In this document: one piece after another, positions 13,086 to 37,070 of the stretch
How positions within the stretch are numbered: the first letter of the stretch is position 1
Layout: every line of letters starts with the position of its first letter
Assembly: GCA_002269645.1 (NCBI GenBank)
Contig: NIVC01002066.1
Span: 1-64,000 of the forward strand
Length of the DNA: 64,000 bases
DNA from: Macrostomum lignano
Taxonomy: Eukaryota
Direction of reading: 5' to 3'
Made by a program: the position numbers and the translations under genes
The notes under the pieces: model-generated
The model's input: only the letters and a program-made list of their open reading frames with translations
Told to the model about the DNA's origin: nothing
The model's database searches: none

Positions 13086-13391
13086 AATCTCTTCATCTAA
13101 CAGACTCACCCCCTCTTTCTCCCTCCGTCCCTTCCTTCACCCTCCCCTCTTCTCCTTTCATGCCCCTCTTTTCCCCTCCCCGCTTTCTCACTCCCACTCC
13201 TTCCTCTCTATTTCCCTCCCTCCCTTGCTTCTCACTCTGCCTCTTCCTCCCATCCTCTCTTTTTCCTTCTGTCCCCTCTTTCTCCCAGCCTCGTCTCTCT
13301 TTCTCACTCAGTCCCCCTCTTTCTCCCTTCCTCTCTTTCTCCTTAATTCTTATCCCACTCTTACCATTTCTCATCCTACACCGCTTTCCAG
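13086..13391 (+). promoter_or_regulatory. Long polypyrimidine tract ending in CCGCTTTCCAG, a probable splice acceptor 4 nt before the gene A ATG
   Basis: CT-rich tract; the same CCGCTTTCCAG-N4-ATG arrangement occurs in paralog B. Confidence 0.55.
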
Positions 13392-13395
13392 AAAA

Positions 13396-16300
13396 ATGAG
13401 CCAAAATAAAAGTCTGCATCAGCCCGTCACTACCGGCAACATCACTCAAACTGCTCGACGCGCTGCAAACCATGGGTACTTCAGCGACTTCCTCCAGGCC
13501 ACTTGCACTGCTGCACTCAATGGTCACTTTGAAGACGTCAAGTTTCTCGTCCCACAAATCAATGACCAATCAAACAGGGACACCTGCTGCATCAAAGCTG
13601 CCGAAAAAGCTGCAAACAGTGGTCACTCTGAAATCGTCAAGTTTCTCGTCCCACAAATCAATGACCAATCAAACAGGGACACCTGCTGCATCAAAGCTGC
13701 CGAAAAAGCTGCAAACAGTGGTCACTTTGAAATCGTCAAGTTTCTCGTCCCACAAATCAATGACCAATCGAACAGGGACACCTGCTGCATCAAAGCTGCC
13801 GAAAAAGCTGCAATTCGTGGTCACTTTGAAATCGTCAAATTTCTTGTCCCACAAATCAATGACCAATCAAACAGGGACACCTGCTGCATCAAAGCTGCCG
13901 AAAATGGTGCAATTCGTGGTCACTTTGAAATCGTCAAGTTTCTCGTCCCACAAATCAATGATCAATCAAACAGGGACACCTGCTGCATCAAAGCTGCCGA
14001 AAATGGTGCAATTCGTGGTCACTTTGAAATCATCAAGTTTCTCGTCCCACAAATCAATGATCAATCGAACAGGGACACCTGCTGCATCAAAGCTGCCGAA
14101 AATGGTGCAATTCGTGGTCACTTTGAAATCATCAAGTTTCTCGTCCCACAAATCAATGATCAATCAAACAGGGACACCTGCTGCATCAAAGCTGCCGAAA
14201 ATGGTGCAATTCGTGGTCACTTTGAAATCATCAAGTTTCTCGTCCCACAAATCAATGATCAATCAAACAGGGACACCTGCTGCATCAAAGCTGCCGAAAA
14301 TGGTGCAATTCGTGGTCACTTTGAAATCGTCAAGTTTCTCGTCCCACAAATCAATGACCAATCAAACAGGGACACCTGCTGCATCAAAGCTGCCGAAAAA
14401 GCTGCAATTCGTGGTCACTTTGAAATCGTCAAATTTCTTGTCCCACAAATCAATGACCAATCGAACAGGGACACCTGCTGCATCAAAGCTGCCGAAAATG
14501 GTGCAATTCGTGGTCACTTTGAAATCATCAAGTTTCTCGTCCACAAATCAATGATCAATCAAACAGGGACACCTGCTGCATCAAAGCTGCCGAAAATGGT
14601 GCAATTCGTGGTCACTTTGAAATCATCAAGTTTCTCGTCCCACAAATCAATGACCAATCAAACAGGGACACCTGCTGCATCAAAGCTGCCGAAAATGCTG
14701 CAGACAATGGTCACTTTGAAATCGTTGAGTTTCTCGTCTCACAAATCAATGACCAATCAAACAGGGACACCTGCTGCATCAAAGCTGCCGAAAAAGCTGC
14801 AAACAGTGGTCACTCTGAAATCGTCAAGTTTCTCGTCCCACAAATCAATGACCAATCAAACAGGGACACCTGCTGCATCAAAGCTGCCGAAAAAGCTGCA
14901 AACAGTGGTCACTTTGAAATCGTCAAGTTTCTCGTCCCACAAATCAATGACCAATCAAACAGGGACACCTGCTGCATCAAAGCTGCCGAAAATGGTGCAA
15001 TTCGTGGTCACTTTGAAATCATCAAGTTTCTCGTCCCACAAATCAATGATCAATCAAACAGGGACACCTGCTGCATCAAAGCTGCCGAAAATGGTGCAAT
15101 TCGTGGTCACTTTGAAATCATCAAGTTTCTCGTCCACAAATCAATGATCAATCAAACAGGGACACCTGCTGCATCAAAGCTGCCGAAAATGGTGCAATTC
15201 GTGGTCACTTTGAAATCATCAAGTTTTTCGTCCCACAAATCAATGACCAATCAAACAGGGACACCTGCTGCATTAAAGCTGCCGAAAAGGCTGCAATTCG
15301 TGGTCACTTTGAAATCGTCAAGTTTCTCGTCCCACAAATCAATGACCAATCAAACAGGGACACCTGCTGCATCAAAGCTGCCGAAGAAGCTGCACTCCGT
15401 GGTCACTTTGAAATCGTCAAGTTTCTCGTCCCACAAATCAATGACCAATCAAACAGGGACACCTGCTGTATCAAAGCTGCCGAAAAAGCTGCAGACAATG
15501 ATCACTTTGAATTCTTCAAGTTTCCCGTCCAACAAATCAATGACCAATCAAACGGGGACACCTGCTGCATCAAAGCTGTCGAAGAAGCTGCAGACAGTGT
15601 TCACTTTGAAATCGTCAATTTCCTCGTCCAACAAATCAATGACCAATCAAACAGGGACACCTGCTGCATCAAAGCTGCCGAATATGCTGCAATTCGTGGT
15701 CACTTTGAAATCGTCAAGTTTCTCGTCCAACAAATCAATGACCAATCAAACAGGGACACTTGCTGCATCAAAGCTGCCGAATATGCTGCAATTCGTGGTC
15801 ACTTTGAAATCGTCAAGTTTCTCGTCCCACAAATCAATGACCAATCAAGCAGGGACACCTGCTGCATCAATGCTGCCGAAAAAGCTGCAGTCAAGGGTCA
15901 CTTTGAAATCGCAGAGTTTCTCCTCTCACAAATCAATAACCAATCAAACAGGGACACCTGCTGCATCAAAGCTGCTGAATCTGCTGCACTCCGTGGTCAC
16001 TTTCAAACCGTCCAGTTTCTCGTCCCACTAATCAGTGACCAATCAAACAGAGACACCTGCTGCATCAGTGCTGCCGAAAAAGCTGCAGAATATGGTCACT
16101 TTGAGATCGTCGAGTTTCTCGTCCCACAAATCAATGACCAATCAAACAGGGACACCTGCTGCATCAAAGCTGCCGAATATGCTGTAGACAATGGTCACTT
16201 TGAAATCGTCAAGTTGCTCATCGCGTGTCTCTCAAGTCCAGATCTAAAAGCGAATCTCCGTTTCCAGTACGTAGTCGCAGCTTGCTCTCGTCTTCAGGAA

Positions 16301-19300
16301 AATGTCGTTGCTTCTCTCCGCCTTGAGCCCGAGTGGCTCTTCCAATCCAGCACCATCCTCAGCTTCACTGCAGCAATGGCCATCGAAGGCAGAAACTCCG
16401 TTCTCAACAAAACCCTCTCTCAAATGCAGCCAGCTCAAATCACACAGCTGCTCCGTCTCTCAATCTCTCAAAGACACGTCGCTCTTGCTGTCACGCTGCT
16501 CAATCATGAGCAATTCAGCAGACAGCATGTCGATCTCTCAGACGACAACACAGGAGCCACTGCTCTCATGCTCGCAGCTGATGCAGGTCATCACGAACTC
16601 ATTCACAAACTCATCGATCTCGGTGCGTCAGTGCGTGCTGAAGACAGTCAGGGTCGGACTGCTCTGTCACGAGCGTGCCAAGCCGGTCACGTTCGAGCAG
16701 CCAAGATTCTTATTGACAATGGAGCCGATGCCAGTCATCGAGACAATCAGGGTCTCACGTGTGCGCAGGTGGCACAGCGATTTGAGCAGCGGCAGGTGCT
16801 GCGGCTGCTAAATCCCACCGAGTCAGTTGCCATTTGTCTCTCTACTTGCAATCACTTCGCTACATTACCTCGCAAATCTTTCACACATTCCAGAAACACA
16901 CAGCACCCACAACTAGTTGCTCACCGCCTCCACCCGTGAGTCTGACCGCTTTCACTGCCCCCTGCCTTCCTTGGATTGAGATTGGGCCACTGCAATTTTT
17001 AAATCCGCCTCCACTGACTGCACCTGCACTCTGACCTCTCCTGCTCCACAAACTCGCATCCTTCCAGACTCTCAGACGAGGAGCTGCATCGACTGCTCAG
17101 CGAGGCGGGATTCACCGAGCAGAGAGCAAAGTGTCAGCAGAGACTGGCTAACTGGCTGGAAGAAGTCGCTCGAGTCCTCACACAGGATGACTATCGCAGG
17201 CAGATGACGGGCAGCTACGCAGAGGGCTGGGCCAACAGTCTGGTGCAAGTGAACGGCAGGACAGCTGCAGACTCGGACATTGACTGGACTGTGCTGGTTC
17301 CTGGGCAGCAGTTCCATCTGGAAGGTGGCTGCAATGGACGAAAGAGTCGGCAGGATTCATGCAAAGACGCCACTCCGCTGCAGGTCAATGAGGGCCACGC
17401 ACAGGTGCCAGTCGGAGCAGGTCAGTGACGCTGGGCTCACTATCAAAGTCCAAAACTCTGTTCAATTTTTATTCGATACGGAGTGCTTGAACTTCAGAGT
17501 TCACAAGTTCAACCGGAGTTTGAGTCCGTTCTAAAATGCGATTCAGCACTCATTTCGCATTAAATTGAAATTCTTGCAATTGCACCGCCTCAGCATTTCG
17601 GAGGTTATATCAAATAATTATTTAGGAATGGTATGCACACAGTATAAAAACTCTTAAAATACGCAAGTTGTTAAATCCTGATCTGAAAGAAAGTAAAATC
17701 CAATATACTAAGAAAGATTTTTTACCATGAACTCCATGAAGCAATTAGCATTTCAACGAATACATAGCTTTATTCATTAATTACAGTAGTAGCACTGACA
17801 CAAAAACAGAACGAAATCAACTAACACATTCAAGCAGTTTTAAAACAACCAACGTTTTTCACTCGCCACAAAGCGAATCTCTGCTCACTGCGCTCTGCAG
17901 GCAGCCAACCTGCAGTGACAGCCACGGCATACGGTGTGCGGCCTGCACAGGACACGTGCCAAGCGATCCACTGCTGCAGCAGTTTCTGTGAGGACAGAAT
18001 TAAAAAACTTTTTCAATTACCTGGATTTGTTCACCTCGTTCAAGCGACCAGACCGAGCTCGACCAACGAGCTCAGAGTGAGTTTCAGCTTCCAAGAAAAA
18101 GACATCATGAGACGGCTGAGCACAGTCCAGGGCCAGCTGTTCACACTCATCAAGTTCATCTTCAAGAGACACTTGCCGCTCACTCTGGACACACCTGGAC
18201 TCAAGACCTACCATGCAAAGTCTCTGCTATTCTTCATGCTGGAGAAGCATGGCACAGATCCTTCGATTGAAACTTGGCAGCCCCACAATCTGATCGCTCT
18301 GCTCAACGAGTCTCTCGACATGATGCTGAGCTTCATCGACTCGAGCAGCAGCTCGCCCGATGAGTGCATGCCGCACTTCTTCATGCCCGACGCTCCGCTC
18401 TACTTCAAGAACGCTGGAATCGGCGGCGACTTCGACAACACGAAGGCGAGGGTTCGAGACCGACTTTGTGAGCTGAGAAGCGACATCGGCGGAGTGGTCG
18501 AGCAGCTGAGGAGACTCGTGAGACCTCTGCAGTCAGAGAAGTTCTACTTTCACCCGTTCACTCTGCTCCCTCTGACAGCGCCGCCTGCTGTCACGGAGAT
18601 CAGGAAAGGAAGTGATTGCTATCCAGAAATTCACTCCAAGTTCGCAGACGTGTACAGTCTGTTGCACCAGTGTGTGGGCGAGCTGCAGTCTGAATCGAGC
18701 GACAGAGACACCCTGATGAGGCAGCTCAGTCTCCTGCATCATCATCGGCTGCAGTGGTGCAAGTGCGCCGCCCTGTGCATGACCGCCATGGCGCATTTGA
18801 AGTTCGGAGAATCTAAGGAGGCTGAGAGACTCGCGATGGAGCTGCAGAGACATCAGGTTGAGTCAGGGTTGAAGCCACATTATATTCGAGAAGAGTGGTA
18901 CATTCCAAAACTGCCAGAAGACTCAGACTGGGCGTGGAGGTTCTGCCTCCCCTGCGACTCTCCGCCTCGCTTCCCATTCCTTCCCGAGTTCACGCAGACT
19001 CTGTTCACAGCCAGACTGTCGCAGCCTCTCTCCTCCCACCTGTACGTGAACTTCCGCTGCCTGAGCTGGAGTCTCCAAGCTGAGCTGCTCCGCAATCGCG
19101 CACCTGCAATCGCATTCGATCATTGGATTGAACAGCTGCTTGGAGACCCGGACTTGGAGGAGCTGCTCACTCTGGCTCACTACAGCGACTGCCGCGAGCA
19201 CGTGGAGCTCAGCCTGCAGCAGATGGAGATGATCGAGAAAGAGAGACGCGTCGCCATGGAGACGCAGGACGAGGAGAAGATCGGCTGGGTCAGGGAAAAG

Positions 19301-19381
19301 CTGGAGATACTTGATGCAGCCGGAGTTCTCAAAGCCGCGTCGCAAAGTCGAGGTCGGAAAAGGAAGGCTGAGTCAGACTGA
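13396..19381 (+). CDS. Ankyrin-repeat / Mab-21 (cGAS-like receptor, cGLR) nucleotidyltransferase, copy A. Exons ~13396-16821, 17068-17420, 17901-19381. Two 1-bp deletions (~14541, ~15134) frameshift the ANK array, so this is a possible pseudogene or assembly error; ~1750 aa if corrected
   Basis: 28 AxxGHFEIVKFLV cores, then 3 canonical ANKs (GATALMLAADAGH, GRTALSRACQAGH). NTase signature GSYAEG...DSDID in exon 2; a likely third Asp (QDTCQAI) and Mab-21 motifs LRVSFSFQEK, LKTYHAKSLLFF, MPHFFMP in exon 3. GT..AG introns with compatible phases. The exon 1/2 junction has an alternative same-phase donor at 16936. Confidence 0.8.
13520..16215 (+). repeat. Coding 99-bp tandem array (33-aa ankyrin unit, 28 cores)
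   Basis: GGTCAC cores spaced 99 bp apart from 13525 to 16196, minus 2 nt for the two deletions. Confidence 0.95.
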
Positions 19382-19504
19382 CTGCCTGATGCAGTGTTCG
19401 ATGCTGATACAAATTTCATGTACTTTAGACTTTTAAATCAAACTGTTTATTCTGGCGCATGCTGACTTGATGGGATTCTGCTGGTTCTGCATGAAAACAC
19501 CTCC

Positions 19505-20000
19505 ACATGCTGTTGGATTGTCTGTGCATGCCGTTGGATTGTCTGTGCATGCCGTTGGATTGTCTGTGCATGCCGTTGGATTGTCTGTACATGCTGTTGG
19601 ATTGTCTGTGCATGCCGTTGGATTGTCTGTACATGCTGTTGGATTGTCTGTACATGCTGTTGAATTGTCTGTACATGCTGTTGGATTGTCTGTACATGCT
19701 GTTGGATTGTCTGTACCTGCTGTTGAATTGTCTGTACATGCTGTTGGATTGTCTGTACATGCTGTTGGATTGTCTGTACATGCTGTTGGATTGTCTGTAC
19801 ATGCTGTTGAATTGTCTGTACATGCTGTTGGATTGTCTGTACATGCTGTTGGATTGTCTGTACATGCTGTTGGATTGTCTGTACATGCTGTTGGATTGTC
19901 TGTGCATGCTGTTGGATTGTCTGTGCATGCCGTTGGATTGTCTGTACATGCTGTTGGGTTGTCTGTAAATGCTGTTGAACTGTCTGTACATGCTGTTGGG
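19505..20000. repeat. 21-bp minisatellite (GCTGTTGGATTGTCTGTACAT), ~23 copies, 3' of gene A
   Basis: Direct reading; the source of the spurious ORFs at 19425-20117; absent downstream of paralog B. Confidence 0.95.
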
Positions 20001-20516
20001 TTGTCTTTACATGATGTTGGATCAATGTCTATAGTTTTTTCTTTTGCTGATTCTGTTGCCTGTTTAGGAAATGAGCAGGTCCAAAGCCATCGAGTGCCAG
20101 CAGCCCTCCTGCTATGAACTGCAGTTTTGTATATTTGCGCTGCAATTCAATTCACACTGCATGCTGAATTGCTTTTTCCGTTCAAACTGCGTGTCTGCTT
20201 TGATGCGGGCTTTTCTCTGCAGTTTTGTTCTGCGGACTTCAATACCCGATTGCCAATGCTGTTTAATGAAAATATTCAAGCCAAATTTACAGGTAGCAGT
20301 TGTCTGCATGAAACTGAAAAACTAAAAGGTCGGCTGGGTCAGGAAGAAGCTGGCGAGTTGAACTCAGAATTTTGTAAGCTTCTCTGGCTTTTGTGGGAGC
20401 TGTTTGAGATATTTTGCTATAGATATCTTATAAATATTTTGTGTTTTGTGGCTTAAAACATTGTGTGTACATGCTCCTGGTTTATTTAAGAACCTGCTCT
20501 CAGAATGAATATTGAG

Positions 20517-20809
20517 TTACTGACAGGCTGACAGCTCCCTCATGAACATTCAGTGACTGACAGCCTGACAGCTCCCTCATGAGCATTCAGTGACTGACAG
20601 CCTGACAGCTCCCTCATGAACATTCAGTGACTGACAGCCTGACAGCTCCCTCATGAGCATTCAGTGACTGACAGCCTGACAGCTCTCTCATGAACATTCA
20701 GTGACTGACAGGCTGACAGCTCCCTCATGAACATTCAGTGACTGACAGGCTGACAGCTCCCTCATGAACATTCAGTGACTGACAGCCTGACAGCTCCCTC
20801 ATGAACATT
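20517..20809. repeat. 37-bp minisatellite (TGACTGACAGCCTGACAGCTCCCTCATGAACATTCAG), ~8 copies
   Basis: Period 37; same family as 34268-35264. Confidence 0.95.
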
Positions 20810-21104
20810 ACCTAAAATTCCATTATTTTATCAATTGCTGTTTCATAATATTTCATGTAGCTTTGTTAAAATACACTCGTAGTACATGTATGTTTGCTTG
20901 CCTTTTCCAGGTCGCCATTAAATTTGAAAAATAATGGAAGAGTTTGTGCATGGTTTCTCGAACTCACTGTAGTGTGAGCACCTTTTGTGTAATTTCTGAA
21001 TTCTATTAGTTAGTAGCTTCTGTATTATTGTTGATAATTATTGTATTTTGCTTTAATTTAGTCACGTCTTCAATGTACTTTTCTTGTTAGTTAGAATCAA
21101 TTTT

Positions 21105-22155
21105 GTGTAAACAGGTTAGAAGTCAGACACCAATTGTGACTCTCTCAATTGTGAGTTTTTCTGCGAACCCCAGCTTTGCGCGGTCAGCCAATCAGAACCG
21201 GCCTGGACCCTGGCACGCGGCAAAATCCAAGTCTACCCGGCGCCGCGGGCACAGTGCAAATCAGCTTAGCGAGCGGCCGGCCAGACGACGACCACCCGGC
21301 TTGAGGGGGGTTTTGAGGGGTTTGACTCTGACTATATATGAAAGTGTGTTTTGGCAATCGGATCTCACTTTTCTCTCTCTCTCTTTCCCCGGCCTTGGTT
21401 TTGTTCCGGCTTCCCGGCCGTTTTGCCTAGTTTTGGTTCGCGCTTTGAGGCGCCTGAGTTCGTCACCCCGGTCCGTGTTTTGCTTCCCTGCCCGACCGCT
21501 TCAGTCTTGTAGCGTAACGTCTACGGCAAATTTCTGTCTGAAGTCGTCGCTATTAAGCGCGGTCTAGTTAGAGACTGTCGGATTTGACCAAGTACGTGGC
21601 CTCGACCCAGAGGGCCTCAGTGTCACACTGAAGGGCAGCGCTGATAGAATTTAGTCAGTGCTCCGTTGAACGGTCAATTCGGCAGGGCTCTCGTTTGAGT
21701 GTAGGTTCTGGTTTAGGCCAGGGGTTAGGAGTCTTCTCCGTGCTCCCGTGTTCGGTTCCTCTTCTTCCTCAGCTGAGATCCGCTTGCCAGTTGCGTAACT
21801 AATTATTACTAATCGTTGTATCGTTATTATTGTTCGTTCAAATCATCTGCGCCGCGAATCGCATTGAATTTTGTAACTTTATTAAATCTAATTAAATCGT
21901 CAAGTCAATCAAAATTAGTCATTCTTGCTAGGATTATCACTCTCTAAATCCGTTCGGTTCGTCTTCTCCTGCGTTCTTTCTTTTCCGGTACTGTACCTGC
22001 GGCTATTGGAGAAAGACTGGTAGGACTCGCCGACCGGCGATAGGCGATTAGGGCCAATAGTTTTAAAATCTCCGAACGCTCCAAGTAGGTTTGTCTAGTA
22101 GGGCCTAAATAGTTGCTTATCGTGCATGCTATATACATTTATTGTATCTATCACA
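21105..22155 (+). mobile_element. Possible solo LTR
   Basis: TGT...ACA candidate ends, CCAAT and TATA-like motifs followed by a CT-rich segment and ATTAAA. No TSD identified. Confidence 0.25.
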
Positions 22156-22574
22156 TCACCCTTTGAGTTATCCGCCCCACAATGCTGCCTTCAAAGTGCC
22201 GCGTGCTGAGAGCTTTCACGATTTTAAAGTTAACAAATCAAAATTCCTGAATACAACATGAGAATCCTACAGTTGATCACCTGCAAGATCCCTGCAGACA
22301 AAAATAAAAGTACAAACGGCTGCTAGGCCACAATAACATCAAAGGTCAGCCGGCACCTCCTCAGCCAGCAGGCAGTCGCAGAATCGCCGGTGGCTGCCTG
22401 CAGCGCCAGCAGCGGCACCTCCTGAACTTCCGGCTGTGGGTGGCCGCTCGGCTCTGCAGCATCTGCAGTGCAGCAGCCGCCTCGGCCTGCGATTCGAGCC
22501 ACTCCGCCAGCGTCCAGGTCTCGGCTTGCCTGGAGCTGCGCCGCCCTCTGACGGTCAGGCAGGGACTGCAGGAC

Positions 22575-22757
22575 CGCCCTCACACAGCCACAGGCAGCCC
22601 TCACACAGCCACAGGCAGCCCTCACAGCCAAAGGCAGCCCTCACACAGCCACAGGCAGCCCTCACACAGCCACAGGCAGCCCTCACACAGCCACAGGCAG
22701 CCCTCACACAGCCACAGGCAGCCCTCACACAGCCACAGGCAGCCCTCACACAGCCAA
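22575..22757. repeat. 21-bp minisatellite (GCCCTCACACAGCCACAGGCA), ~9 copies
   Basis: Direct reading. Confidence 0.9.
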
Positions 22758-22857
22758 ACGTAACCCTTAGTACCCAGCCCGGAGAGGAACTCCACGAGCA
22801 CAAAGAGGAACGTAGAGGTTGGCGAGAGCACAGAGCTCTCTAGGAAATAGACAGCCA

Positions 22858-24140
22858 CCTGATCCCACACCCTATCTGATCCCACACCTATCTGATCCCA
22901 CACCCTATATGATCCCACACATATCTGATCCCACACCCTATCTGATCCCACACCTATCTGATCCCACACCCTATATGATCCCACACATATCTGATCCCAC
23001 ACCCTATCTGATCCCACACCCTATCTGATCCCACACATATCTGATCCCACACCCTATCTGATCCCACACCCTATCTGATCCCACACCCTATCTGATCCCA
23101 CACCCTATCTGATCCCACACCCTATCTGATCCCACACCCTATCTGATCCCACACCCTATCTGATCCCACACCCTATCTGATCCCACACCCTATCTGATCC
23201 CACACCCTATCTGATCCCACACCCTATCTGATCCCACACCCTATCTGATATCTGATCCCACACCCTATCTGATCCCACACCCTATCTGATCCCACACCCA
23301 ATCTGATCCCACACCCAATCTGATCCCACACCCTATGTGATCCCACACCCTATGTGATCCCACACCCTATCTGATCCCACACCCTATCTGATCCCACACC
23401 CTATCTGATCCCACACCCAATCTGATCCCACACCCTATCTGATCCCACACCCTATCTGATTCCACACCCTATCTGATCCCACACCCTATCTGATCCCACA
23501 CCCTATCTGATCCCACACCCTATGTGATCCCACACCCTATCTGATCCCACACCCTATCTGATCCCACACCCTATGCGATCCCACACCCTATCTGATCCCA
23601 CACCCTATCTGATCCCACACCCTATCTGATCCCACACATATCTGATCCCACACCCTATCTGATCCCACACCCTATCTGATCCCACACCCTATCTGATCCC
23701 ACACCCTATCTGATCCCACACCCTATCTGATCCCACACCCTATCTGATCCCACACCCTATCTGATCCCACACCCTATCTGATCCCACACCCTATCTGATC
23801 CCACACCCTATGTGATCCCACACCCTATGTGATCCCACACCCTATCTGATCCCACACCCTATCTGATCCCACACCCTATCTGATCCCACACCCTATGTGA
23901 TCCCACACCCTATGTGATCCCACACCCTATCTGATCCCACACCCTATCTGATCCCACACCCTATCTGATCCCACACCCTATCTGATCCCACACCCTATCT
24001 GATCCCACACCCTATCTGATTCCACACCCTATCTGATCCCACACCCTATCTGATCCCACACCCTATCTGATCCCACACCCTATCTGATCCCACACCCTAT
24101 CTGATCCCACACCCTATCTGATCCCACACCCTATCTGATC
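22858..24140. repeat. 17-bp minisatellite (CTGATCCCACACCCTAT), ~75 copies
   Basis: Direct reading; mixed 16/17-bp units at the 5' end. Confidence 0.95.
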
Positions 24141-24559
24141 CCTCTCCCGCCTCTCATTTTCCGTCGTCTCCACCTCTGAACGCAATGACTACTTCATTGA
24201 TTGTATGACAATACTGGCTGAAGGATAAAGTGTAGTTTAAAAAGTTTTTTGGCACGGATTTCTAATTATTGTAAAGATTTTTTCCGCTCTTTGTCGAAAA
24301 AGTGAATTTATTCTATTTATTATTCTTAAAAGCTATTTTAATCTGCAAGTATCATGAGTCTCTCAATAGAGTTATTTACATCAATGGCGACACCAGCTAC
24401 CAGCTTGTACAGTAAAATATCCTCCAGACAGAACCCATTGCGGGCGAAGGATGATCTCAGGAAGCTGTAAGCAGGCAAATCCTGCAGCTGCCCATGCGAG
24501 TCGGTCGGGATCGCACATTCGAGGCTCGGCCAGCCTGTCCAAGGATGGCCGAAGTGCAA

Positions 24560-24850
24560 AAAATGGACGATCTGAAAAATGGCATCAGAGCTGCAGCCGC
24601 TACCGATGTCACTGTGAAGGCAACTGCAGCGCACACGCAACTGCGGCATCCCAGACCGAAACGCCTCTGAGCAGTGCCGCATCTGCGGTGCATGGCGGGC
24701 CACCAAGGCGGCCGTCAACTCGCACAGCCGCCGCCTGCACAAGGAGGCCCGAGAGCTGCAGAAGCTGAGTAGCGGGTCGCTGATGAGGCAGCCGATGCAC
24801 GGAAGCTGGCAAAAGAAATTGCTGTCGAGCTCTGCGGCTGGCTGAAGGCA
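24560..24850 (+). pseudogene. Degenerate Cys/His-rich coding fragment with a C2H2-like finger (CRIC-x12-H-x4-H), probably transposon-derived
   Basis: Translation EQCRICGAWRATKAAVNSHSRRLH in a frame broken by frameshifts and stops. Confidence 0.3.
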
Positions 24851-25074
24851 TTCAGATCTGATGTCAAGATGCCAAAGTCCTTCAGGCGCACCTGGCAAAG
24901 CTGATGACCGAGCTGCGGTTCGTCCATTTCAAATCTCATCTTGGAGTGCAGCAGGCGTCCGTTCGGCTGATTTCTAGACGATCTGAAGCGCTGCCCTCTG
25001 AAGCAAAACAGCTTCAGCTTTGGGGAAAGTCGGACGATTTCTAAGAATGTTTGGACGAAATCGTCACTGAAGAG

Positions 25075-26045
25075 TAATGGAATGTAATGGAATGTAATGG
25101 AATGTAATGGACTGTATAGAATGTAATGGAATGTAACGGAATGTATTGTAATGGAATGAAATGTAATGGTATGTAATGAAATGTAATGGTATGTAATGAA
25201 ATGTAATGGAATGTAATGGAATGTAATGGACTGTAATGAAATGTATTGTAATGGAATGAAATGTAATGGAATGTAATGGAATGTAATGGACTGTATAGAA
25301 TGTAATGGAATGTATAGAATGTAATGGAATGTAATGGACTGTATAGAATGTAATGGAATGTAACGGAATGTATTGTAATGGAATGAAATGTAATGGTATG
25401 TAATGAAATGTAATGGTATGTAATGAAATGTAATGGAATGTAATGGAATGTAATGGACTGTAATGAAATGTATTGTAATGGAATGAAATGTAATGGAATG
25501 TAATGGAATGTAATGGACTGTATAGAATGTAATGGAATGTATAGAATGTAATGGAATGTAATGGACTGTATAGAATGTAATGGAATGTAACGGAATGTAT
25601 TGTAATGGAATGAAATGTAATGGTATGTAATGAAATGTAATGGTATGTAATGAAATGTAATGGAATGTAATGGAATGTAATGGACTGTAATGAAATGTAT
25701 TGTAATGGAATGAAATGTAATGGAATGTAATGGAATGTAATGGACTGTATAGAATGTAATGGACTGTATAGAATGTAATGGAATGTAACGGAATGTATTG
25801 TAATGGAATGAAATGTAATGGTATGTAATGAAATGTAATGGTATGTAATGAAATGTAATGGAATGTAATGGAATGTAATGGACTGTAATGAAATGTATTG
25901 TAATGGAATGAAATGTAATGGAATGTAATGGAATGTAATGGACTGTATAGAATGTAATGGAATGTAACGTAATGCAATGGAATGTAATGAAATGTATTGT
26001 AATGGAATGAAATGTAATGGTATGTAATGGAATGTAATGGGATGT
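25075..26045. repeat. (AATGG/AATGT)n pentamer-derived satellite with ~227-bp higher-order structure
   Basis: Marker variant TAACG at 25134, 25361, 25588, 25786, 25965. Confidence 0.9.
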
Positions 26046-26227
26046 AATCTAGCTACTTTATTTTAATAGACAATTAACTTACATATACGATTTCCGATGC
26101 TTGAATCCATTGGAAGTTATAACTGTTTGTTATTGCATTTTTTTGTTACAAAACATAATTGCAGGTAATAAATTTGTAATTATAACCTAACCTAAATATA
26201 AATGAATGCATATATATTATGCAATGG

Positions 26228-26762
26228 CTCTCCCGCATCTCAGCTGCATCTCCATCTACTTCTCAGTCTCTCCCGCATCTTAGCTGCATCTCCATCTACT
26301 TCTCAGTCTCTCCCGCATCTCAGCTGAATCTCTATCTACTTCTCAGTCTCTTCCGCATCTCAGCTGCATCTCTATCTACTTCTTAGCCTCTCCCGCATCT
26401 TAGCTGCATCTCTATCTACTTCTCAGTCTCTCCCGCATCTTAGCTGCATCTCTATCTACTTCTCAGTCTCTCCCGCATCTCAGCTGCATCTCTATCTACT
26501 TCTCAGTCTCTCCCGCATCTCAGCTGCATCTCTATCTACTTCTCAGTCCCTCCCGCATCTCAGCTGCATCTCTATCTACTTCTCAGTCTCTCCCGCATCT
26601 TAGCTGCATCTCTATCTACTTCTCAGTCTCTCCCGCATCTCAGCTGCATCTCTATCTACTTCTCAGCCTCTCCCGCATCTCAGCTGCATCTCTATCTACT
26701 TCTCAGCCTCCCCCGCATCTCAGCTGCATCTCTATCTACTTCTCAGCCTCCCCCGCATCTCT
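26228..26762. repeat. 40-bp minisatellite (TCTCCCGCATCTCAGCTGCATCTCTATCTACTTCTCAGTC), ~13 copies
   Basis: Period 40. Confidence 0.95.
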
Positions 26763-27509
26763 TTACATTGGCCTTCTTTTCAAATATAATTGTGCCTGAA
26801 GGCATCAAAGCACTTTTGTGCAGCGAGCGCACCGTAAGGATTCCAAGGACAACTTAGTAATCCTTGAAGGATTCTTCTGTGCTTGCGGGATTGAGTTTAT
26901 GTTCAATTGAGAGGGCATATTTATGCAGAGTGTTTGCAAAGCTGTGAGGAACTCAAAGAAAACTGAATGCGAAATAAAATCCCAGCAAATCATCAAAATA
27001 TCAAAACTGCATGAGACGCCTTGTGACACCGTGCTGGCCTCACTGCGGAGGTCAATCTCAGGTTAGAGATTTTCCATGCACCGTGTCTTCACCATCACTG
27101 ACGCCTTGACGCAGTGCAGGGGCAGCAGCAAAAGGGCGCCATGGCTGCGGTGCAGAGGCTACATTTGAGCGCCGGTCCTCAGCGGCTGTCCTGTTGAGAA
27201 GGAAAGCTCAAAATTTGAGTGTGGCCGCAGCAGCCCCTCAGCTCAGCCGCTGGATTCGCCACTGCTGCAAAATACCCGAGTGGCGCACTGCTCAAACTCA
27301 AACTGCAGCAGGAGCGGAAAATTGTGGAGACAAGCGGAGAGCAAATGCTCGGTGAGTAGCAGGTGGGCGAGCGGTCAGCCCTGGCAACACTGGAGGCGTG
27401 GAAGCAGCCAGAACATAAAAGTGTTTTGGATCACAATTTATTAAGGTGAATACATGTATTATAGCATTGTAAAAGTACTTTATTTAGAACTTTCCGTAGC
27501 ATGTACACG

Positions 27510-27910
27510 GAACTCGAGCTCAGATTCCAGTGAAACTCGTGCTCAGATTCCAGTGAAACTCGTGCTCAGATTCCAATGGAACTCGTGCTCAGATTCCACT
27601 GAACTCGTGCTCAGATTCCAGTGAAACTCGTGCTCAGATTCCAGTGAAACTCGTGCTCAAATTCCAGTGAAACTCGTGCTCAGATTCCAATGGAACTCGT
27701 GCTCAGATTCCACTGAACTCGTGCTCAGATTCCAGTGAAACTCGTGCTCAGATTCCAGTGAAACTCGTGCTCAAATTCCAGTGAAACTCGTGCTCAGATT
27801 CCAATGAAACTCGTGCTCAGATTCCAATGAAACTCGTGCTCAGATTCCAGTGAAACTCGTGCTCAGATTCCAGTGAAACTCGTGCTCAAATTCCAGTGAA
27901 CTTAGTGCTC
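27510..27910. repeat. 23-bp minisatellite (AAACTCGTGCTCAGATTCCAGTG), ~17 copies
   Basis: Period 22-23. Confidence 0.92.
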
Positions 27911-28657
27911 AGTTATGCAGAGTTCGTTCAGCTTTAAGGCGAGACCGAGATCGCCAATTTCGGATTTGCTTTTCGTTCCGAAATGATCGAGAATTCTGAG
28001 CCGACAGTCAGCTACCGCCGCTTATGAGGATCTTGGACAAGCTACTCTTTGGAAACGTACTGGGCTGGAGCCTGGAACGCCTGGGCCTTCCACGTTCCCC
28101 AAGCCAGTCTATCCATCGCTTTGGGTCAGGGGTGGGGCAGAGGTTCCGCTTTCCAATGTGCGTTTCGGCCCAACCTCTTGCGCTGTCTGCCCACCGCAAG
28201 TGTACGCGAACAAATTTCTGTGCCGGCTTCGTACGAGCGTCCGCTCGCTTCATCTCCCAGCCTTCCCTTATTAGAACCAGCGTTCGGTACTTCTGTAGCA
28301 GCCCGCCGCGGATTTGTCCAGTCTTTGCGCCCCTCAGCCACTGCCTCTTCCTCTTATCTCAAGTACCGTGTTTGCTTGCTGCAGGGCCTCCCGTCTGCTT
28401 TTGCGAGTTCCGCTTTGTCTGTGGCCTGCGAGTCTCTGCCTGCCGCTCCATCAGCAGACTGGCGAGCTCATAATCATAACTGGCGATCGGCGAGTCCTGC
28501 TCTGCCCTGCTGCAGTCTGCTGGGCTGGCATTGGAGTGAGCTGTCAATTGGGGCTTGCAATTTTTCACTGACCGAATCCTTTACTCTGAGTTCATAGACT
28601 GCCTTTGCTCGCCTCTCCCTCCTTCCCTTCTTTTTTCCCTCGAGTTTTGGTTAAACT

Positions 28658-29597
28658 GTGAACTGTCACTCTGTGCTGGGACCTGAGCACTGTGATCTGT
28701 CACTCTGTGCTGGGACCTGAGCACTGTGATCTGTCACTCTGAGCTGGGACCTGAGCACTGTGATCTGTCACTCTGAGCTGGGACCTGAGCACTGTTATCT
28801 GTCACTCTGAGCTGGGACCTGAGCACTGTGATCTGTCACTCTGAGCTGGGACCTGAGCACTGTGATCTGTCACTCTGGGCTGGGACCTGAGCACTGTGAT
28901 CTGTCACTCTGAGCTGGGACCTGAGCACTATGGTCTGTCACTCTGAGCTGGGACCTGAGCACTGTGATCTGTCACTCTGAGCTGGGACCTGAGCACTGTG
29001 ATCTGTCACTCTGAGCTGGGACCTGAGCACTGTGATCTGTCACTCTGAGCTGGGACCTGAGCACTGTTATCTGTCACTCTGAGCTGGGACCTGAGCACTG
29101 TGATCTGTCACTCTGAGCTGGGACCTGAGCACTGTGATCTGTCACTCTGGGCTGGGACCTGAGCACTGTGATCTGTCACTCTGAGCTGGGACCTGAGCAC
29201 TGTGGTCTGTCACTCTGAGCTGGGACCTGAGCACTGTGATCTGTCACTCTGAGCTGGGACCTGAGCACTGTGATCTGTCACTCTGAGCTGGGACCTGAGC
29301 ACTGTGATCTGTCACTCTGAGCTGGGACCTGAGCACTGTGATCTGTCACTCTGAGCTGGGACCTGAGCACTGTGATCTGTCACTCTGAGCTGGGACCTGA
29401 GCACTGTGATCTGTCACTCTGAGCTGGGACCTGAGCACTGTGATCTGTCACTCTGAGCTGGGACCTGAGCACTGTGGTCTGTCACTCTGAGCTGGGACCT
29501 GAGCACTGTGATCTGTCACTCTGAGCTGGGACCTGAGCACTGTGATCTGTCACTCTGAGCTGGGACCTGAGCACTGTGATCTGTCACTCTGGGCTGG
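28658..29597. repeat. 34-bp minisatellite (TGTGATCTGTCACTCTGAGCTGGGACCTGAGCAC), ~27 copies
   Basis: Period 34. Confidence 0.95.
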
Positions 29598-29754
29598 CAT
29601 CGACGGATGCACAAACCTTTGAAACATCTGCCACTCTGACAGCAGCCGCGACTGAAATCTGTAACTCTAAAAGCAGCCAAGGATCATAGGTAGGGCTCAC
29701 GAAGATTTTTAAAATTCTTTATAAAAATTTACAGCCACAATGCAGCCCCAATTG

Positions 29755-30192
29755 CTCGCTTCCCTCTCCTTCGCTCCCTTTTTTCGTCTCTTTCTCCCAC
29801 ACTCCCTCCTCTCTCCCTCCCTCCTCCCTTCTTCTCCTTCTCCCTCCCTTCTCTCCTTCTCCCTCTTTCCCCTCCGCTCCTTCTTCCTCTCTCCCCTTCT
29901 TCTCCCTCCCTCCTCCCTCCCCTTTTCTTCGCCTCCCTCCCTCACACCCTTCTCCTCCCTCTCCCCTTCTTCTCCCTCCCTCCCCTTTTTCTCCTCCTCC
30001 CTCTTTCTCCCCTCCTCCTCCTCCCTCTTTCTCCCCTCCTTCTCCTCCTCCCTCTTTCTCCCCTTCTTCTCCTCCTCCCTCTTTCCCCCTCCTTCTCCCT
30101 CTCTCCCTCCCTCCTTCTCTCTTCTCCCTCTCTCCCCTCTTTCCACCAACTCTCTTTCTTACACCCTCTCCCACCACGCCTCCGCTTTCCAG
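29755..30192 (+). promoter_or_regulatory. Polypyrimidine tract and probable acceptor (CCGCTTTCCAG) 4 nt before the gene B ATG
   Basis: CT-rich low-complexity tract; same arrangement as gene A. Confidence 0.55.
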
Positions 30193-30196
30193 AACT

Positions 30197-33100
30197 ATGG
30201 ACCACAATCAAAGTCGCCAACGGCCCCTCACCACGGAAAGCATCACCCAAACTGCTCGACGCGCTGCGGCCCAAGGATACTTTGACGACATCTCCAGCGC
30301 TACGTTTGAAGCTGCACACTATGGTCGCTTTCAAGATGTTCAGTTTCTCGTACCACTCATTAATGACCACTCTAACAGGGACGCCTGCTGCATCAATGTT
30401 GCCAATCCAGCTGCACGCAATGGTCACCTTCAAATCGTCAAGTTTCTCGTCTCACAAATCATTGACCACTTTAAAAGGGACTTCTGCTGCATCCGTGCTG
30501 CCAACTTTGCTGCAGCCAATGGTCACCTTCAAATCGTCCAGTTTCTCGTCCTACTCATCAATGACCACTTTAAAAAGCAAACCTGCTGCATCATTGCTGC
30601 CAAATCAGCTGCACGCAATGGTCACCTTCAAATCGTCCAGTTTCTCGTCCCACTCATCAATGACTACTCTAAAAGGGACACCTGCTGCATCGATGCTGCC
30701 GATGAATCTGCACGCTATGGTCGCCTTCAAATCGTCCAGTTTCTCATCTCCTGTCTCTCAAGTCACGATCTAAAAGCAAAGCTCCGTTTCCAATGCGCAC
30801 TCATAGCCTGCTCTCAAGGACACGAACCTCTCGTCGCCTCCCTCGACCTACAGCCCCATTGTCTCTTCCAATACAACACCATCCTCACCTCCACTGCTAA
30901 CTTGGCCATCCAAGGCACCAACTCTGTTCTCAACAAAATCCTCTCTCAAATGCAGCCAGGTCAAATCACACAACTCCTCCATCTCTCCATCTCCCAGCGA
31001 CACGTCGCTCTTGCCGCCACACTGCTCAATCATCACCAATTCACCACACAGCATGTCGATCTCCCAGACGACAACACCGGAGCCACCGCTCTCATGCTCG
31101 CAGCTGATGCTGGTCAGCACGAACTCATTCTCAAACTCATCCATCTCGGCGCCTCACTGCACGCTCAAGACAAACACGGTCGCACTGCCCTGTCACGAGC
31201 CTGCCAAGCCGGTCACGTGCGAGCAGCCAAGACTCTCATCGACTATGGAGCCGATGCCAGCCATCGAGACAGTCAGGGCCTCACCTGTGCGCAGCTCGCA
31301 CAGCGATTTGAGCAGCGGCAGGTCCTCCGACTGCTTAATCCCAACGAGTCAGTTCCCCTGACAGTTCCCCAGTCAGAACCTTCCAGACTCTCTCACCACC
31401 ACCTGCATCCACTGCTCAACGAGGCGGGATTCACCAAACAGAGAGCCAACTGTCAGCAAATACTCGCTGACTGGCTGGAAAATGTCACTCAAGTCCTCAC
31501 ACAGGATGGCAGGCGGATGACCGGCAGCTACGTAGAGGGCTGGGCCAACAGTCTGCTCCAAGTCAACGGCAGGACAGCTGCAGACTCGGACATTGACTGG
31601 ACTGTGCTGCTTGATGGGCAACCATTCCATCTCGAAGGTGGCTGCCATGGACAATTTGGTTCCTGCAAAAACGCTACTCAACTGCAAGTCAACGAAGGCC
31701 ACGCACAGGTGCCAGTCGGAGCAGGTCAGTCACGCTCGACTCATCCCAATACTAGCCCCCCCCCCAATCAACTTTGCTCAATTCGATACCCACAGTCTGA
31801 ACTTCTCAACCTCACTTTCACACCTTGCTCAGTTTAAATCCATCTAGCACTCGCTTTGAATACAAATTCTGCAAACCGATTCAAATCCTACCAATCATTG
31901 CACTGCCTCACCACCTAACAGGTTATAAAACAATTACCATGCAATGCCATGCGCAAGAAAGTAAACTGCAACAAACTGCAACAATGTAAAATACTTTCTC
32001 TCCCTCTCTGCCCATCATCAACTCCTTACCGCTGCATTTCAACAAATACTTTGCTTCACTCATTGACTACAGTAGTAGCACTCACACACGAACTCAACCG
32101 ACACACTCAAGCAGCTGCAAACCAACCCCATCTTCTTCACTCGACACTCTCCTCTCACTGCGCTCTGCAGGCAGCCAACCTGCTGTCACAGCCGCAGCAT
32201 GCGGTGTGCGGCCTGCACAGGACACGTGCCATGCGATCAAGTGCTGCAGCAGTTTCTGTGAGGACAGGATTAGAAAACTGCTTAGATCCGATGATAAGGT
32301 TCACCTCGTGCGGGCGACCAGACCGAGCTCGACCAACGAGCTCAGAGTGAGCTTCAGCTTCCAAGAGAAACACATCATGAGAGACCTGAGCACAGTGCAG
32401 GGCCAGCTGTTCACACTCATCAAGTTCATCTTCAAGAGACACTTGCCGCTCACTCTGGACACACCTGGACTCAAGACCTACCATGCAAAGACTCTGCTAT
32501 TCTTCATGATGGAGAAGCATGGAACAGATCCTGAAACTGAGGCTTGGCAGCCCCACAATCTGATCGCTCTGCTCAACGAGTCTCTCGACATGATGCTGAG
32601 CTTCATCGACTCGAGCAGCAGCTCGCCCGATGAGTGCATGCCGCACTTCTTCATGCCCGACGCTCCGCTCTACTTCAAGAACGCTGGAATAGGCGGCGAC
32701 TTCGACAACACGAAGGCGAGGGTTCGAGACCGACTTTGTGAGCTGAGAAGCGACATCGGCGGAGTGGTCGAGCAGTTGAGGATACTCGTGAGACCTCTGC
32801 AGTCAGAGAAGTTCTACTTTCACATGTTCACTCTGCTGCCTCTGACAGCGCCGCCTGCTGTCACGGAGATCAGGGAAGGAAGTAAATATCCAAAAAGCGA
32901 CTCCAAGTTCGCAGACGTGTACAGTGTGGTGCACCAGTGTGTGAGAGAGCTGCAGTCGGAATCGAGCGACAGAGACACCCTGATGAGGCAGCTCAGTCTC
33001 CTGCATGAGCCGAAGTGGTGCAAGTGCGCCGCAATGTGCATGACCACCATGGCGCATTTAAAGTTCGGAGAATCTGAGGAGGCTGAGAGACTCGCGATGG

Positions 33101-33855
33101 AGCTGCATAGACACCAGGTTGAGTCAGGGTTGACGCCACGGGATATTGGAGACGAGAGTACCTGGTACCTGATCAACATAAAACTGCCAAAAGACTCGGA
33201 CTGGGCGTGGAGGTTCTGCCTCCCCTGCGACTCTCCGCCTCGCTTCCCATTCCTTCCTGAGTTCACGCAGACTCTGTTCACAGCCAGACTGTCGCAGCCT
33301 CTCTCCTCTCACATGTACGTGAACTTCCGCTGCCTGAGCTGGAGTCTCCAAGCTGAGCTGCTCCGCAATCACGCACCTGCAATTAAACTAGAGGATTGGA
33401 AGCGAGAGCTGCAAGAAGACCCGGACTTGGAGGAGCTGCTCACTCTGGCTCACTACAGCGACTGCCGCGAGCACGTGGAGCTCAGCCTGCAGCAGATGGA
33501 GATGATCGAGAAAGAGAGACGCATCGCCATGGAGACGCAGGACGAGGAGAAGATCGGCTGGGTCAGGCAGAAGCGGTGGCTAGTTTCGAACCGCAGTGGC
33601 AGCGACAGCGGCGCTCACCGCAGCAGGGAAGATGAGGAGCGGAGGCTGTGGGCGAGGGCGAGGCTGCGGCGAGACGGGGCCGACTTGGGGCGCCTTGTTG
33701 CCATGGAAACTGCAGCGGAGCAGAGCGACAGCTGGACTCACGCCTCGCTCAGTCGGAAGAGACTGGAGAAGCTGGAAAGACTTGATGCAGCAGCGGGAGT
33801 CCTTAAAGTGGAGTCGCAAAGTCGAGTTCGGAAAAGGAAGGCTGAGTCAGACTGA
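30197..33855 (+). CDS. Ankyrin-repeat / Mab-21 (cGAS-like receptor, cGLR) nucleotidyltransferase, copy B, intact. Exons 30197-31347, 31387-31724, 32171-33855 (~1057 aa; 1070 aa if the 39-nt intron is retained)
   Basis: 5 divergent + 3 canonical ANK repeats; GSYVEG...DSDID; QDTCHAI; LRVSFSFQEK; LKTYHAKTLLFF; MPHFFMP. The phase-1 intron GCAG|GTCAGT...CTGCAG|GC is conserved with copy A. No frameshift or internal stop. Confidence 0.88.
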
Positions 33856-34267
33856 CTGCCTGGAGCGGTGTTTGATGCTGACTATTTTCATCTACTTAGT
33901 GTTTTTTCAATCAAACAATTTATTCTGATTCATGCAAAAACTGAAACTGGGCAAATTTGATGCAGGTTTTTTCTGTGATTTTGTTCTGCGGACTTCAATA
34001 CCCAATCGCCAATGTTGTATAATGACATATTCAAGCCAAATGCACAGGTAGCAGTTATCTGCATGAACTCGTTATCTTTTAAGCCTCTCTGGCTTTTGCG
34101 CGATCTGTTTGAGAAGTTCTACTGCACAGGTTTGTGATAAATGTTTTAAATGTACTTTTATGCCCTAAAATATTGTGTGCACATGCTCTCTGACTATTTA
34201 GGCATCTCCCCTCAGAACCAGCCACATTTTTCATTATGTACTTACATCATGTACACATGTACCCTGC

Positions 34268-35264
34268 AGTGACTACCAGCCTGACAGCTCCCTCATGAAC
34301 ATTCACTGACTGACAGCCTGACAGCTCCCTCATGAGCATTCAGTGACTGACAGCCTGACAGCTCCCTCATGAACATTCAGTGACTGACAGCCTGACAGCT
34401 CCCTCATGAACATTCAGTGACTGACAGTCTGACAGCTCCCTCATGAACATTCAGTGACTGACAGTCTGACAGCTCCCTCATGAACATTCACTGATTGACA
34501 GCCTGACAGCTCCCCATGAACATTCAGTGACTGACAGCCTGACAGCTCCCTCATGAACATTCAGTGACTGACAGCCTGACAGCTCCCTCATGAACATTCA
34601 CTGACTGACAGCCTGACAGCTCCCTCATGAACATTCAGTGACTGACAGCCTGACAGCTTCCTCATGAACATTCAGTGACTGACAGTCTGACAGCTCCCTC
34701 ATGAACATTCAGTGACTGACAGCCTGACAGCTCCCTCATGAACATTCAGTGACTGACAGTCTGACAGCTCCCTCATGAACATTCAGTGACTGACAGCCTG
34801 ACAGCTCCCTCATGAACATTCACTGACTGACAGCCTGACAGCTCCCTCATGAACATTCAGTGACTGACAGCCTGACAGCTCCCTCATGAACATTCAGTGA
34901 CTGACAGCCTGACAGCTCCCTCATGAACATTCAGTGACTGACAGCCTGACAGCTTCCTCATGAACATTCAGTGACTGACAGCCTGACAGCTCCCTCATGA
35001 ACATTCAGTGACTGACAGCCTGACAGCTCCCTCATGAACATTCAGTGACTGACAGCCTGACAGCTCCCTCATGAACATTCAGTGACTGACAGCCTGACAG
35101 CTCCCTCATGAACATTCAGTGACTGACAGCCTGACAGCTCCCTCATGAACATTCAGTGACTGACAGCCTGACACCTCCCTCATGAACATTCAGTGACTGA
35201 CAGCCTGACAGCTCCCTCATGAACATTCAGTGACTGACAGCCTGACAGCTCCCTCATGAACATT
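34268..35264. repeat. 37-bp minisatellite, ~27 copies (paralogous to 20517-20809)
   Basis: Same monomer, same position downstream of the paralogous gene. Confidence 0.95.
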
Positions 35265-35969: not shown

Positions 35970-36130
35970 AGACAGACACTTAGAGACACTCAGACAGAAA
36001 CCTAGACAGAAACTCAGACAGACACTCAGACAGACACTCAGACAGACACTAAGGCAGACACTAAGACAGACACTATGACAGACATTCAGACAAACACTAA
36101 GACAGACACTAGAACCAAAAAATACAGACA
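35970..36130. repeat. Degenerate (GACA/GACACT)-type microsatellite
   Basis: Direct reading. Confidence 0.7.
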
Positions 36131-37016: not shown

Positions 37017-37070
37017 CAGGGGTCGACAAACTCTGGCCTGAGGGCCACATGCGGCCTGAGAAGCCTCTCT
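37017..37070 (+). mobile_element. Possible isolated hAT/Charlie-like terminus
   Basis: CAGGGGTCGACAAACT..GGCCTGAGGGCCACATGCGGCC resembles the common hAT MITE 5' end; no matching 3' TIR found. Confidence 0.3.

Follow-up and report, generated by a model that had tools for sequence, protein, structure and literature searches.

A 64,000-nucleotide stretch of DNA from the flatworm Macrostomum lignano (hereafter the window; positions 1 to 64,000 of contig NIVC01002066.1, GenBank assembly GCA_002269645.1) contains two genes, A (13396-19381) and B (30197-33855), both found on the plus strand by open reading frame (ORF) calls and translation. We read them, with a probability of roughly 0.7, as a tandem duplicate pair belonging to a large, Macrostomum-restricted family of ankyrin-repeat (ANK) cGAS-like receptors (cGLRs) within the Mab21 superfamily. 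A preliminary description, made from the letters of the sequence, had proposed two same-strand paralogs in the interval 13396-33855. That interval is exact, running from the ATG of gene A at 13396 to the final base of the stop codon of gene B at 33855, and a tblastn search with B returned A and B only, with no third paralog in the window. The pair was correctly recognised as ANK-cGLR tandem duplicates. Both genes share one layout, in which a short leader precedes a variable number of atypical 33-residue ANK units, and beyond a linker come three canonical ANK repeats, a nucleotidyltransferase of the Mab21/cGAS fold, and a family-specific C-terminal domain of approximately 245 residues.

Gene B is intact, with two exons whose spliced model encodes 1070 residues without interruption. 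Exon 1 (30197-31724, on the plus strand, as are all coding features below) is a single continuous ORF in which ORF and Pfam analyses place the leader, five ANK-like units, the linker, the three canonical ANK repeats (approximately 31076-31340), and the GS/DxD half of the enzyme, marked by the motifs TGSYVEGWANS (31520-31552) and ADSDIDWTV (31580-31606). The ANK-like units coincide with a 99-bp array of 4.4 copies at 82% match (30310-30745) detected by Tandem Repeats Finder (TRF). Since this half and the ANK repeats are encoded together in one uninterrupted exon, the ANK-enzyme fusion in gene B is independent of splicing. Inspection of splice sites revealed a sole intron (31725-32170; GT..AG, phase 1), and exon 2 (32171-33855; ORF and Pfam) contributes the third catalytic Asp (32209-32229), the Mab-21_C lobe with the motif GLKTYHAK (32467-32490), the C-terminal domain, a low-complexity tail absent from A, and the stop codon. 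A charged low-complexity insertion of approximately 60 residues near the C-terminus of B (33600-33780, RWLVSNRSGSDSGAHRSREDEERRLWARARLRRDG...) is likewise missing from A.

The enzyme assignment draws on motifs, profiles and a predicted structure. TGSY.EGWANS, ADSDIDWTV and RPAQDTC occur in both genes, and the catalytic module of the form GS..DSDID..D that had been proposed is therefore present in A as well as in B. The Mab-21_C profile (PF20266) scores above its Pfam cut-off of 24.1 bits in both (29.7 bits in B, 25.8 bits in A), and of the profile searches that had been suggested, those for Ank and Mab-21_C gave matches in both genes, whereas that for the Mab-21 nucleotidyltransferase (PF03281) was silent. 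Because of this silence and the lack of a Protein Data Bank (PDB) match by sequence, the enzyme part was modelled as a structure. An AlphaFold2 model of the enzyme and C-terminal part of B, built on an alignment of 24 family members, reached a mean predicted local confidence (pLDDT) of 88 and a predicted template modelling score (pTM) of 0.90. When the model was compared with the PDB by Foldseek, each of the top 50 matches was either cGAS or MAB21L1 (E 1e-7 to 1e-5 at a probability of 1.00), with template modelling (TM) scores, normalised to the target, of 0.46-0.55. On the predicted structure, the enzyme part has the bilobal Mab21/cGAS fold, as had been claimed, the model of B matching cGAS and MAB21L1 before any other structure.

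Published cGLR active sites follow the pattern GS + [DE]h[DE]h X50-90 h[DE]h (Li et al. 2023, Figure S5 legend). In B, the corresponding residues are G40-S41 and D62-I-D64, followed after 59 residues by D124, a spacing within the published range of 50-90. Conservation of these positions among the 24 family members is nearly complete: GS is found in 24/24, D62 in 23/24, D64 in 22/24 and D124 in 21/24. In the Mab21 core, the ratio of nonsynonymous to synonymous substitution rates (dN/dS) between A and B is 0.45, compared with only 65% identity in the intron that the two genes share, and on this sequence comparison the core, with its complete catalytic set, is under purifying selection. The two catalytic modules had been described as near-identical; their identity is in fact 84% in the last exon and 75% across the first enzyme segment. 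We also observed a cluster of near-invariant His and Cys residues (H75, C80, C87, H99, C131 and C132) around the third catalytic Asp, within residues 75-132 of the modelled segment of B (window approximately 31630-31724 and 32171-32250), which could be a metal site, although its position differs from that of the zinc thumb of cGAS.

Downstream of the Mab21 lobes, the domain of approximately 245 residues is conserved at the protein level between B (33040-33780) and A (18770-19300) and carries the motifs DWAWRFC, FPFLPEFTQ and LYVNFRCLSWSLQAELL. Its model is confident (pLDDT 82.7), and a search of the PDB with this domain alone gave no significant fold match, the best hits being short TPR-like resemblances with E 0.23.

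All strong protein matches of the two genes are M. lignano proteins of 650-1850 residues that combine ANK repeats with Mab-21_C, approximately 40 of which were retrieved in the protein search. When 1.8 billion representatives (clusters at 50% identity) were searched exhaustively without a profile, 98 clusters matched at E<=1e-10, and every cluster sampled was from M. lignano. The best annotated match shows 75% identity over 97% of B, rising to 86% in the enzyme part, and gene B is 78% identical to PAA68676.1 (P0006) over 92% of its length. The family is also present in a published catalogue of cGLRs. Table S2 of Li et al. (2023) assigns Ank_2 domains to six M. lignano accessions, and according to Table S3, an activity screen included the expressed enzyme cores of five M. 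lignano proteins, from which the ANK part had been removed (samples 89-93), including that of PAA68676.1 (BOX15_Mlig016402g1), and were tried with poly I:C and 45-bp dsDNA. Macrostomum is never mentioned in the main text of that study. The preliminary description had been right to warn that ANK-Mab-21 fusions may be catalogued already: because Tables S2 and S3 contain this family as ANK-fused cGLRs, its architecture is on record, and A and B are further members of an already catalogued family. Array-size variation and variable positions are a different matter, for which our literature search found no description in Macrostomum cGLRs.

Comparison with known systems places the pair more precisely. 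The catalogued M. lignano ANK-cGLRs (PAA68676.1 and PAA93208.1; Li et al. 2023) belong to the same family and have the same architecture, and proteins of the PAA68676.1 type share TGSYAEGWANS, ADSDIDWTV, RPAQDTC, GLKTYHAKTLLFFM and CMPHFFMPDAPLYFKNAG with the window genes; the differences are that the window genes are at most approximately 86% identical to them and that the array of A is larger (28 units versus 20) and frame-broken. cGAS and animal cGLRs such as Drosophila cGLR1 and those of coral and oyster share with A and B the predicted bilobal Mab21 fold and the active-site pattern; compared with cGAS, however, the window enzyme is only 13-16% identical in structural alignment and has N-lobe insertions, an extra C-terminal domain, and a near-neutral isoelectric point (pI). 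Fusions of cGLRs to ANK or TPR modules are known elsewhere, Stylophora pistillata having three, for instance, and the cGLR family is massively expanded in bivalves too (Li et al. 2023, Table S5). The nearest relatives outside Macrostomum are bivalve Mab21/TPR proteins such as KAL3881049.1 of Sinanodonta woodiana, with approximately 30-35% identity over the Mab-21_C region. In these proteins, the TPR module is located C-terminal to the enzyme and both PF03281 and PF20266 are matched, whereas the window proteins carry ANK repeats at the N-terminus and lack a PF03281 match. A prokaryotic or viral origin was considered and rejected, as the genes contain GT-AG introns and their relatives are all from Macrostomum; chance was rejected as well, as the arrays, motifs and fold lie far beyond random expectation.

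Gene A has the same components in a damaged reading frame. Three-frame translation and Pfam Ank matches show that its exon 1 (13396-16821) comprises the leader, an array of 27 full units and one cap unit, the linker and the three canonical ANK repeats, and that it is open only after the repair of two 1-bp deletions, which gives a corrected model of 1753 residues. The array itself (13521-16219) consists of 27.3 copies of a 99-bp unit at 93% match (TRF; unit difference matrix). The first lesion lies in unit 11, where CTCGTCCACAAATC replaces CTCGTCCCACAAATC (14536-14549, with a CC run at 14541-14542), and the second is the identical 1-bp deletion in unit 17 (15129-15142, CC run at 15134-15135), which is otherwise the same unit. 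Both represent a change from CCC to CC within CTCGTCCCACAAATC, each shifting the ANK frame by one; the intact form of this sequence occurs 16 times in the window and the variant short of one C exactly twice (14536 and 15129). The ORF that starts at 13396 consequently enters out-of-frame sequence and ends at a stop codon (15145-15147) short of the enzyme. The array of A had been taken as a coding sensor of 28 units, which does not hold for the sequence as assembled: owing to this identical deletion in two identical units, gene A cannot yield an ANK-enzyme fusion. Rescue of the frame through splicing or an internal start found no support, the array units containing no Met codon.

Past the lesions, approximately 1170 codons of gene A remain open and conserved, with intact catalytic residues. 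An intron of 246 nt specific to A (16822-17067), which shows GT..AG borders and in-frame stops and whose removal keeps the frame, separates the ANK part from exon 2 (17068-17420), which encodes the N-terminal half of the nucleotidyltransferase core (TGSYAEGWANS at 17207-17239, ADSDIDWTV at 17267-17293). The following intron (17421-17900; GT..AG, phase 1) is the one shared with B, and the last exon (17901-19381) carries the third catalytic Asp (RPAQDTC, 17939-17959), the Mab-21_C lobe detected by Pfam, the C-terminal domain, and the stop codon. Intron positions had been described as identical in the two genes. This is correct for the main intron, which in both follows ...VGAG in phase 1 with GT..AG borders (17421-17900 in A, 31725-32170 in B), but in sequence and spliced model the intron at 16822-17067 exists only in A, and B reads through a short equivalent of it (31344-31386). 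An intron between the ANK and enzyme parts is present in several M. lignano paralogs (1.4, 7 and 13 kb) and absent from B and from paralog P0005, which looks like a polymorphism of intron loss or gain within the family.

The repeat arrays upstream of the enzyme are ankyrin repeats, as had been proposed. Their period is exactly 99 bp, or 33 residues (TRF), and Pfam Ank_2 is matched in A both within the first 382 residues (E 2e-73) and past the second frameshift (4e-64), as well as in B (1e-26); judged from sequence by eye, the first helix of each array unit is approximately three residues longer than the ANK consensus. A hidden Markov model (HMM) built from the units counts 28 in A and five in B, in agreement with the earlier count and with the TRF copy numbers. 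Array size also varies among close paralogs, from 28, 20, 20, 10, 9, 9 and 8 down to one unit by the same profile, while their enzyme parts remain 75-85% identical, so that unit number is not invariant within the family. The array of A is larger than any in the annotated M. lignano set, where the maximum is 20, and the reading frame is intact in M. lignano arrays of 10 and of 20 units. Units are more similar within arrays (identity 0.73-0.85) than between paralogs (0.35-0.69), and therefore each gene has amplified its own unit. In A, five units (7, 8, 11, 16 and 17) have the same DNA sequence, as do units 2 and 14, whereas the most diverged units are the last eight, at the 3′ side, from which we conclude that the array is very young in its 5′ and central portions.

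Non-coding repeats in the same duplicated block behave similarly. A 21-bp minisatellite of 24.7 copies lies just 3′ of gene A (19505-20022) and is absent after B, and a 37-bp minisatellite is found 3′ of both genes, with 8.2 copies after A (20505-20809) and 27.2 copies after B (34267-35271), where it marks the end of the block (TRF; block comparison). Since these arrays have shifted their copy number equally, repeat instability is sufficient to account for the difference between 28 and five units. The arrays may grow and shrink through unequal crossing-over or slippage between 99-bp units, with each paralog amplifying its own unit type in DNA that would be generally prone to repeat change. The recent, homogeneous expansion had been singled out as the unusual part of the locus; it is indeed young and near-homogeneous in A, but this array is frame-broken and instability suffices as a cause.

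What the pair encodes and what its arrays do may be explained in several ways. In gene A, the openness and conservation of the downstream codons imply that the damage is either very recent or artefactual, and by the usual marks of a pseudogene the picture is mixed, with two frameshifts yet an open downstream frame and the dN/dS of approximately 0.45 given above. Consensus errors inside near-identical repeats are typical of long-read assemblies. A very recently disabled copy and two consensus errors in a repeat are about equally likely explanations. That gene A is truly intact, with both deletions arising from consensus or polishing and the 1753-residue, 28-unit protein being made in the organism, falls slightly below an even chance: the two deletions remove the same C from CCC in units otherwise identical to three error-free units, the roughly 7 kb of coding sequence of A and B show no further lesion, and intact 20-unit arrays are present in M. 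lignano, whereas CCC is only a short homopolymer and a single real deletion spread among identical units by conversion or unequal exchange would leave the same pattern. Independent of the fate of A, the array may be a recognition module under diversifying selection, in which unit number and surface residues would be actively varied between paralogs, and perhaps between individuals, to track ligands. This we regard as possible but doubtful. Paralogs with one to 28 units share enzyme parts that are 75-85% identical, and within units a near-invariant framework contrasts with changes clustered at positions 10, 11 and 14-18, on the first helix beside the GH turn, a pattern that is clearest in P0007, an intact M. 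lignano paralog, and visible in A too; the two residues preceding GH are presumably the positions randomised in designed ankyrin binders (the DARPin consensus). At these variable positions, the ratio of nonsynonymous to synonymous proportions (pN/pS) is 2.4 in P0007 (framework, 0.57) and 1.14 in A (framework, 0.49), but such ratios are biased upward because the positions were picked post hoc, the older array of P0001 lacks any contrast (0.77 versus 0.73), and the nonsynonymous-to-synonymous ratio of distinct variants over the whole unit of A is approximately 0.9. Moreover, the largest and most homogeneous array, that of A, is the frame-broken one, and the non-coding satellites of the block vary equally. 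Positive selection on the variable ANK positions is therefore only suggestive. Of the earlier proposal of a rapidly resized and re-sequenced recognition module, the variable unit number and the localised variable stretch stand, whereas instability suffices for the resizing and selection has not risen above suggestion; family-wide, the two features are a worthwhile lead rather than an established result. Less probable still is an array that serves as a scaffold for autoinhibition or oligomerisation, its length being of little consequence, and that leaves sensing to the enzyme groove or the C-terminal domain; the coexistence of proteins with one to 28 units and the family-wide conservation of a confidently modelled C-terminal domain without known structural match are consistent with such a role, whereas variation confined to one face of a helix speaks in favour of a functional surface on the array.

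The assignment of the pair to the cGLRs must itself be weighed against several observations, all of which count against it. PF03281 matched neither the exons nor the spliced protein, a sequence search with the enzyme part found no PDB relative even at E<=10, and the enzyme assignment consequently rests on predicted structure and motifs. No identical or near-identical annotated protein was found for the window genes, the identity to any annotated M. lignano protein being 75-86%. The 'Note' column of Li et al. (2023) that names the 15 active enzymes of their screen is blank for samples 89-93. STING and cGAS have been reported lost in Schistosoma (PMC4117786) and Schmidtea (PMC13563047), and six cestodes have 0 cGLR and 0 STING in Table S5 of Li et al. 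(2023), which contains no Macrostomum row; our literature search found nothing specific on STING in Macrostomum. An alternative is that the proteins are Mab21-fold scaffolds that synthesise no second messenger, or have another transferase activity, with a role that is perhaps not immune, an explanation which we consider unlikely. The silence of PF03281, the absence of family cores from the active enzymes of the screen and the reported loss of the STING pathway in the other flatworms examined fit it, as does the presence of MAB21L1 among the top structural matches; to our knowledge, no cyclase activity has been demonstrated for vertebrate MAB21L1. On the other hand, Mab21L1/2/3 have no predicted functional active site (Li et al. 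2023), whereas in the family studied here GS and the three acidic residues are each retained by 21-24 of the 24 diverse members, and a family that is large and lineage-specific, duplicates in tandem and carries variable repeats would fit immune receptors better than developmental factors.

Under the favoured assignment to the ANK-cGLRs, intact members probably act as cytosolic sensors, in which ligand binding would switch on the synthesis of a nucleotide second messenger, as far as sequence and model allow this to be judged. The nature of the ligand may be approached through the charge of the core: a pI >8.5 has been associated with nucleic-acid-sensing cGLRs (Li et al. 2023), whereas the Mab21 core has a pI of 6.3 (B) or 7.25 (A), and the family median is 7.9. 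These values, and the absence of the family cores from the enzymes activated by dsDNA or dsRNA, make a ligand of protein or another non-nucleic-acid kind more likely than dsDNA or dsRNA; such a ligand may bind at the ANK surface or at the C-terminal domain. As a side observation, some M. lignano paralogs (L001, L002 at 10001) begin with MGQNLSS or MGQYLSS, in agreement with a consensus of the N-myristoylation type, while the window genes begin with MSQNKS (A, 13396-13410) and MDHNQS (B, 30197-30211), without Gly at position 2.

It is conceivable, though rather unlikely, that Macrostomum, in contrast to the flatworms examined otherwise, not only keeps but has expanded cGLRs in which the ANK arrays constitute a repertoire of binders encoded in the germline, coupling protein or other non-nucleic-acid ligands to nucleotide signalling that possibly does not involve STING. 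Such a repertoire would arise through rapid amplification of units together with substitutions on one helix face, and would, if true, be a natural counterpart of designed ANK binders. Lamprey variable lymphocyte receptors (VLRs), plant and animal NLR-LRR proteins and DARPins likewise combine a conserved repeat framework with few variable surface positions and variable repeat number; however, ANK-cGLRs are not known to have a somatic assembly mechanism, and the likeness is one of resemblance only.

cGLRs are regarded as a major family of animal pattern-recognition receptors, most of them without a known ligand, and approximately one-eighth bear extra domains. Since the prevailing account is that flatworms lost cGAS and STING, the large ANK-cGLR family of Macrostomum, which is a laboratory model, is an informative exception among them. 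An invariant framework, a short variable stretch of helix and arrays of one to 28 units together provide a testable hypothesis for how new specificities may be gained. The pair in the window adds little beyond this family pattern, since B is ordinary and the striking copy, A, is out of frame as assembled.

Comparison of the two copies by blastn delimits the duplicated block to 13088-20809 around A and 29787-35271 around B, including an upstream C/T-rich tract and the 3′ 37-bp satellite. The tract occupies 13088-13395 upstream of gene A (plus strand; also seen in the low-complexity rows of TRF) and has its counterpart at 29787-30196 upstream of B. The 37-bp satellite also occurs 3′ of the M. 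lignano paralog P0005 (L004 16017-17014), where it is 97% identical to the window copy, and it seems to travel with the gene inside the duplication unit. Minisatellites are very dense around the genes (11315-12944 and 19505-29597). Upstream of A there is a 32-bp repeat of 51 copies, and the 10 kb between A and B are almost wholly filled by repeats of 21 bp (25 copies), 21 bp (9), 17 bp (75), 10/227 bp (98), 40 bp (13), 23/114 bp (18) and 34 bp (28). With its GT-AG introns, dense minisatellites and a GC content of 33-56%, the window is eukaryotic in character.

To the right of the gene pair, the longer ORFs (40-55 kb) contain no Pfam families, and several minus-strand ORFs of 130-250 residues at 48671-55418, also without Pfam match, may be remnants of decayed mobile elements. 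Paralogs of the family are clustered elsewhere in M. lignano too. One related locus, L002 (M. lignano NIVC01000038.1:352990-391362), matches the downstream flank of gene B (window 35951-42417) at 76-83% identity and bears a single gene instead of a tandem pair, namely P0001, which has 20 units in an intact first exon of 885 residues and 13 kb between its ANK exon and its enzyme exons. On sequence similarity alone, the window is Macrostomum DNA that belongs either to a diverged paralogous part of the M. lignano genome or to a close congener. A further segment of the window (59813-60788) resembles L002 34183-35166 and is out of order with respect to the remainder of the common flank.

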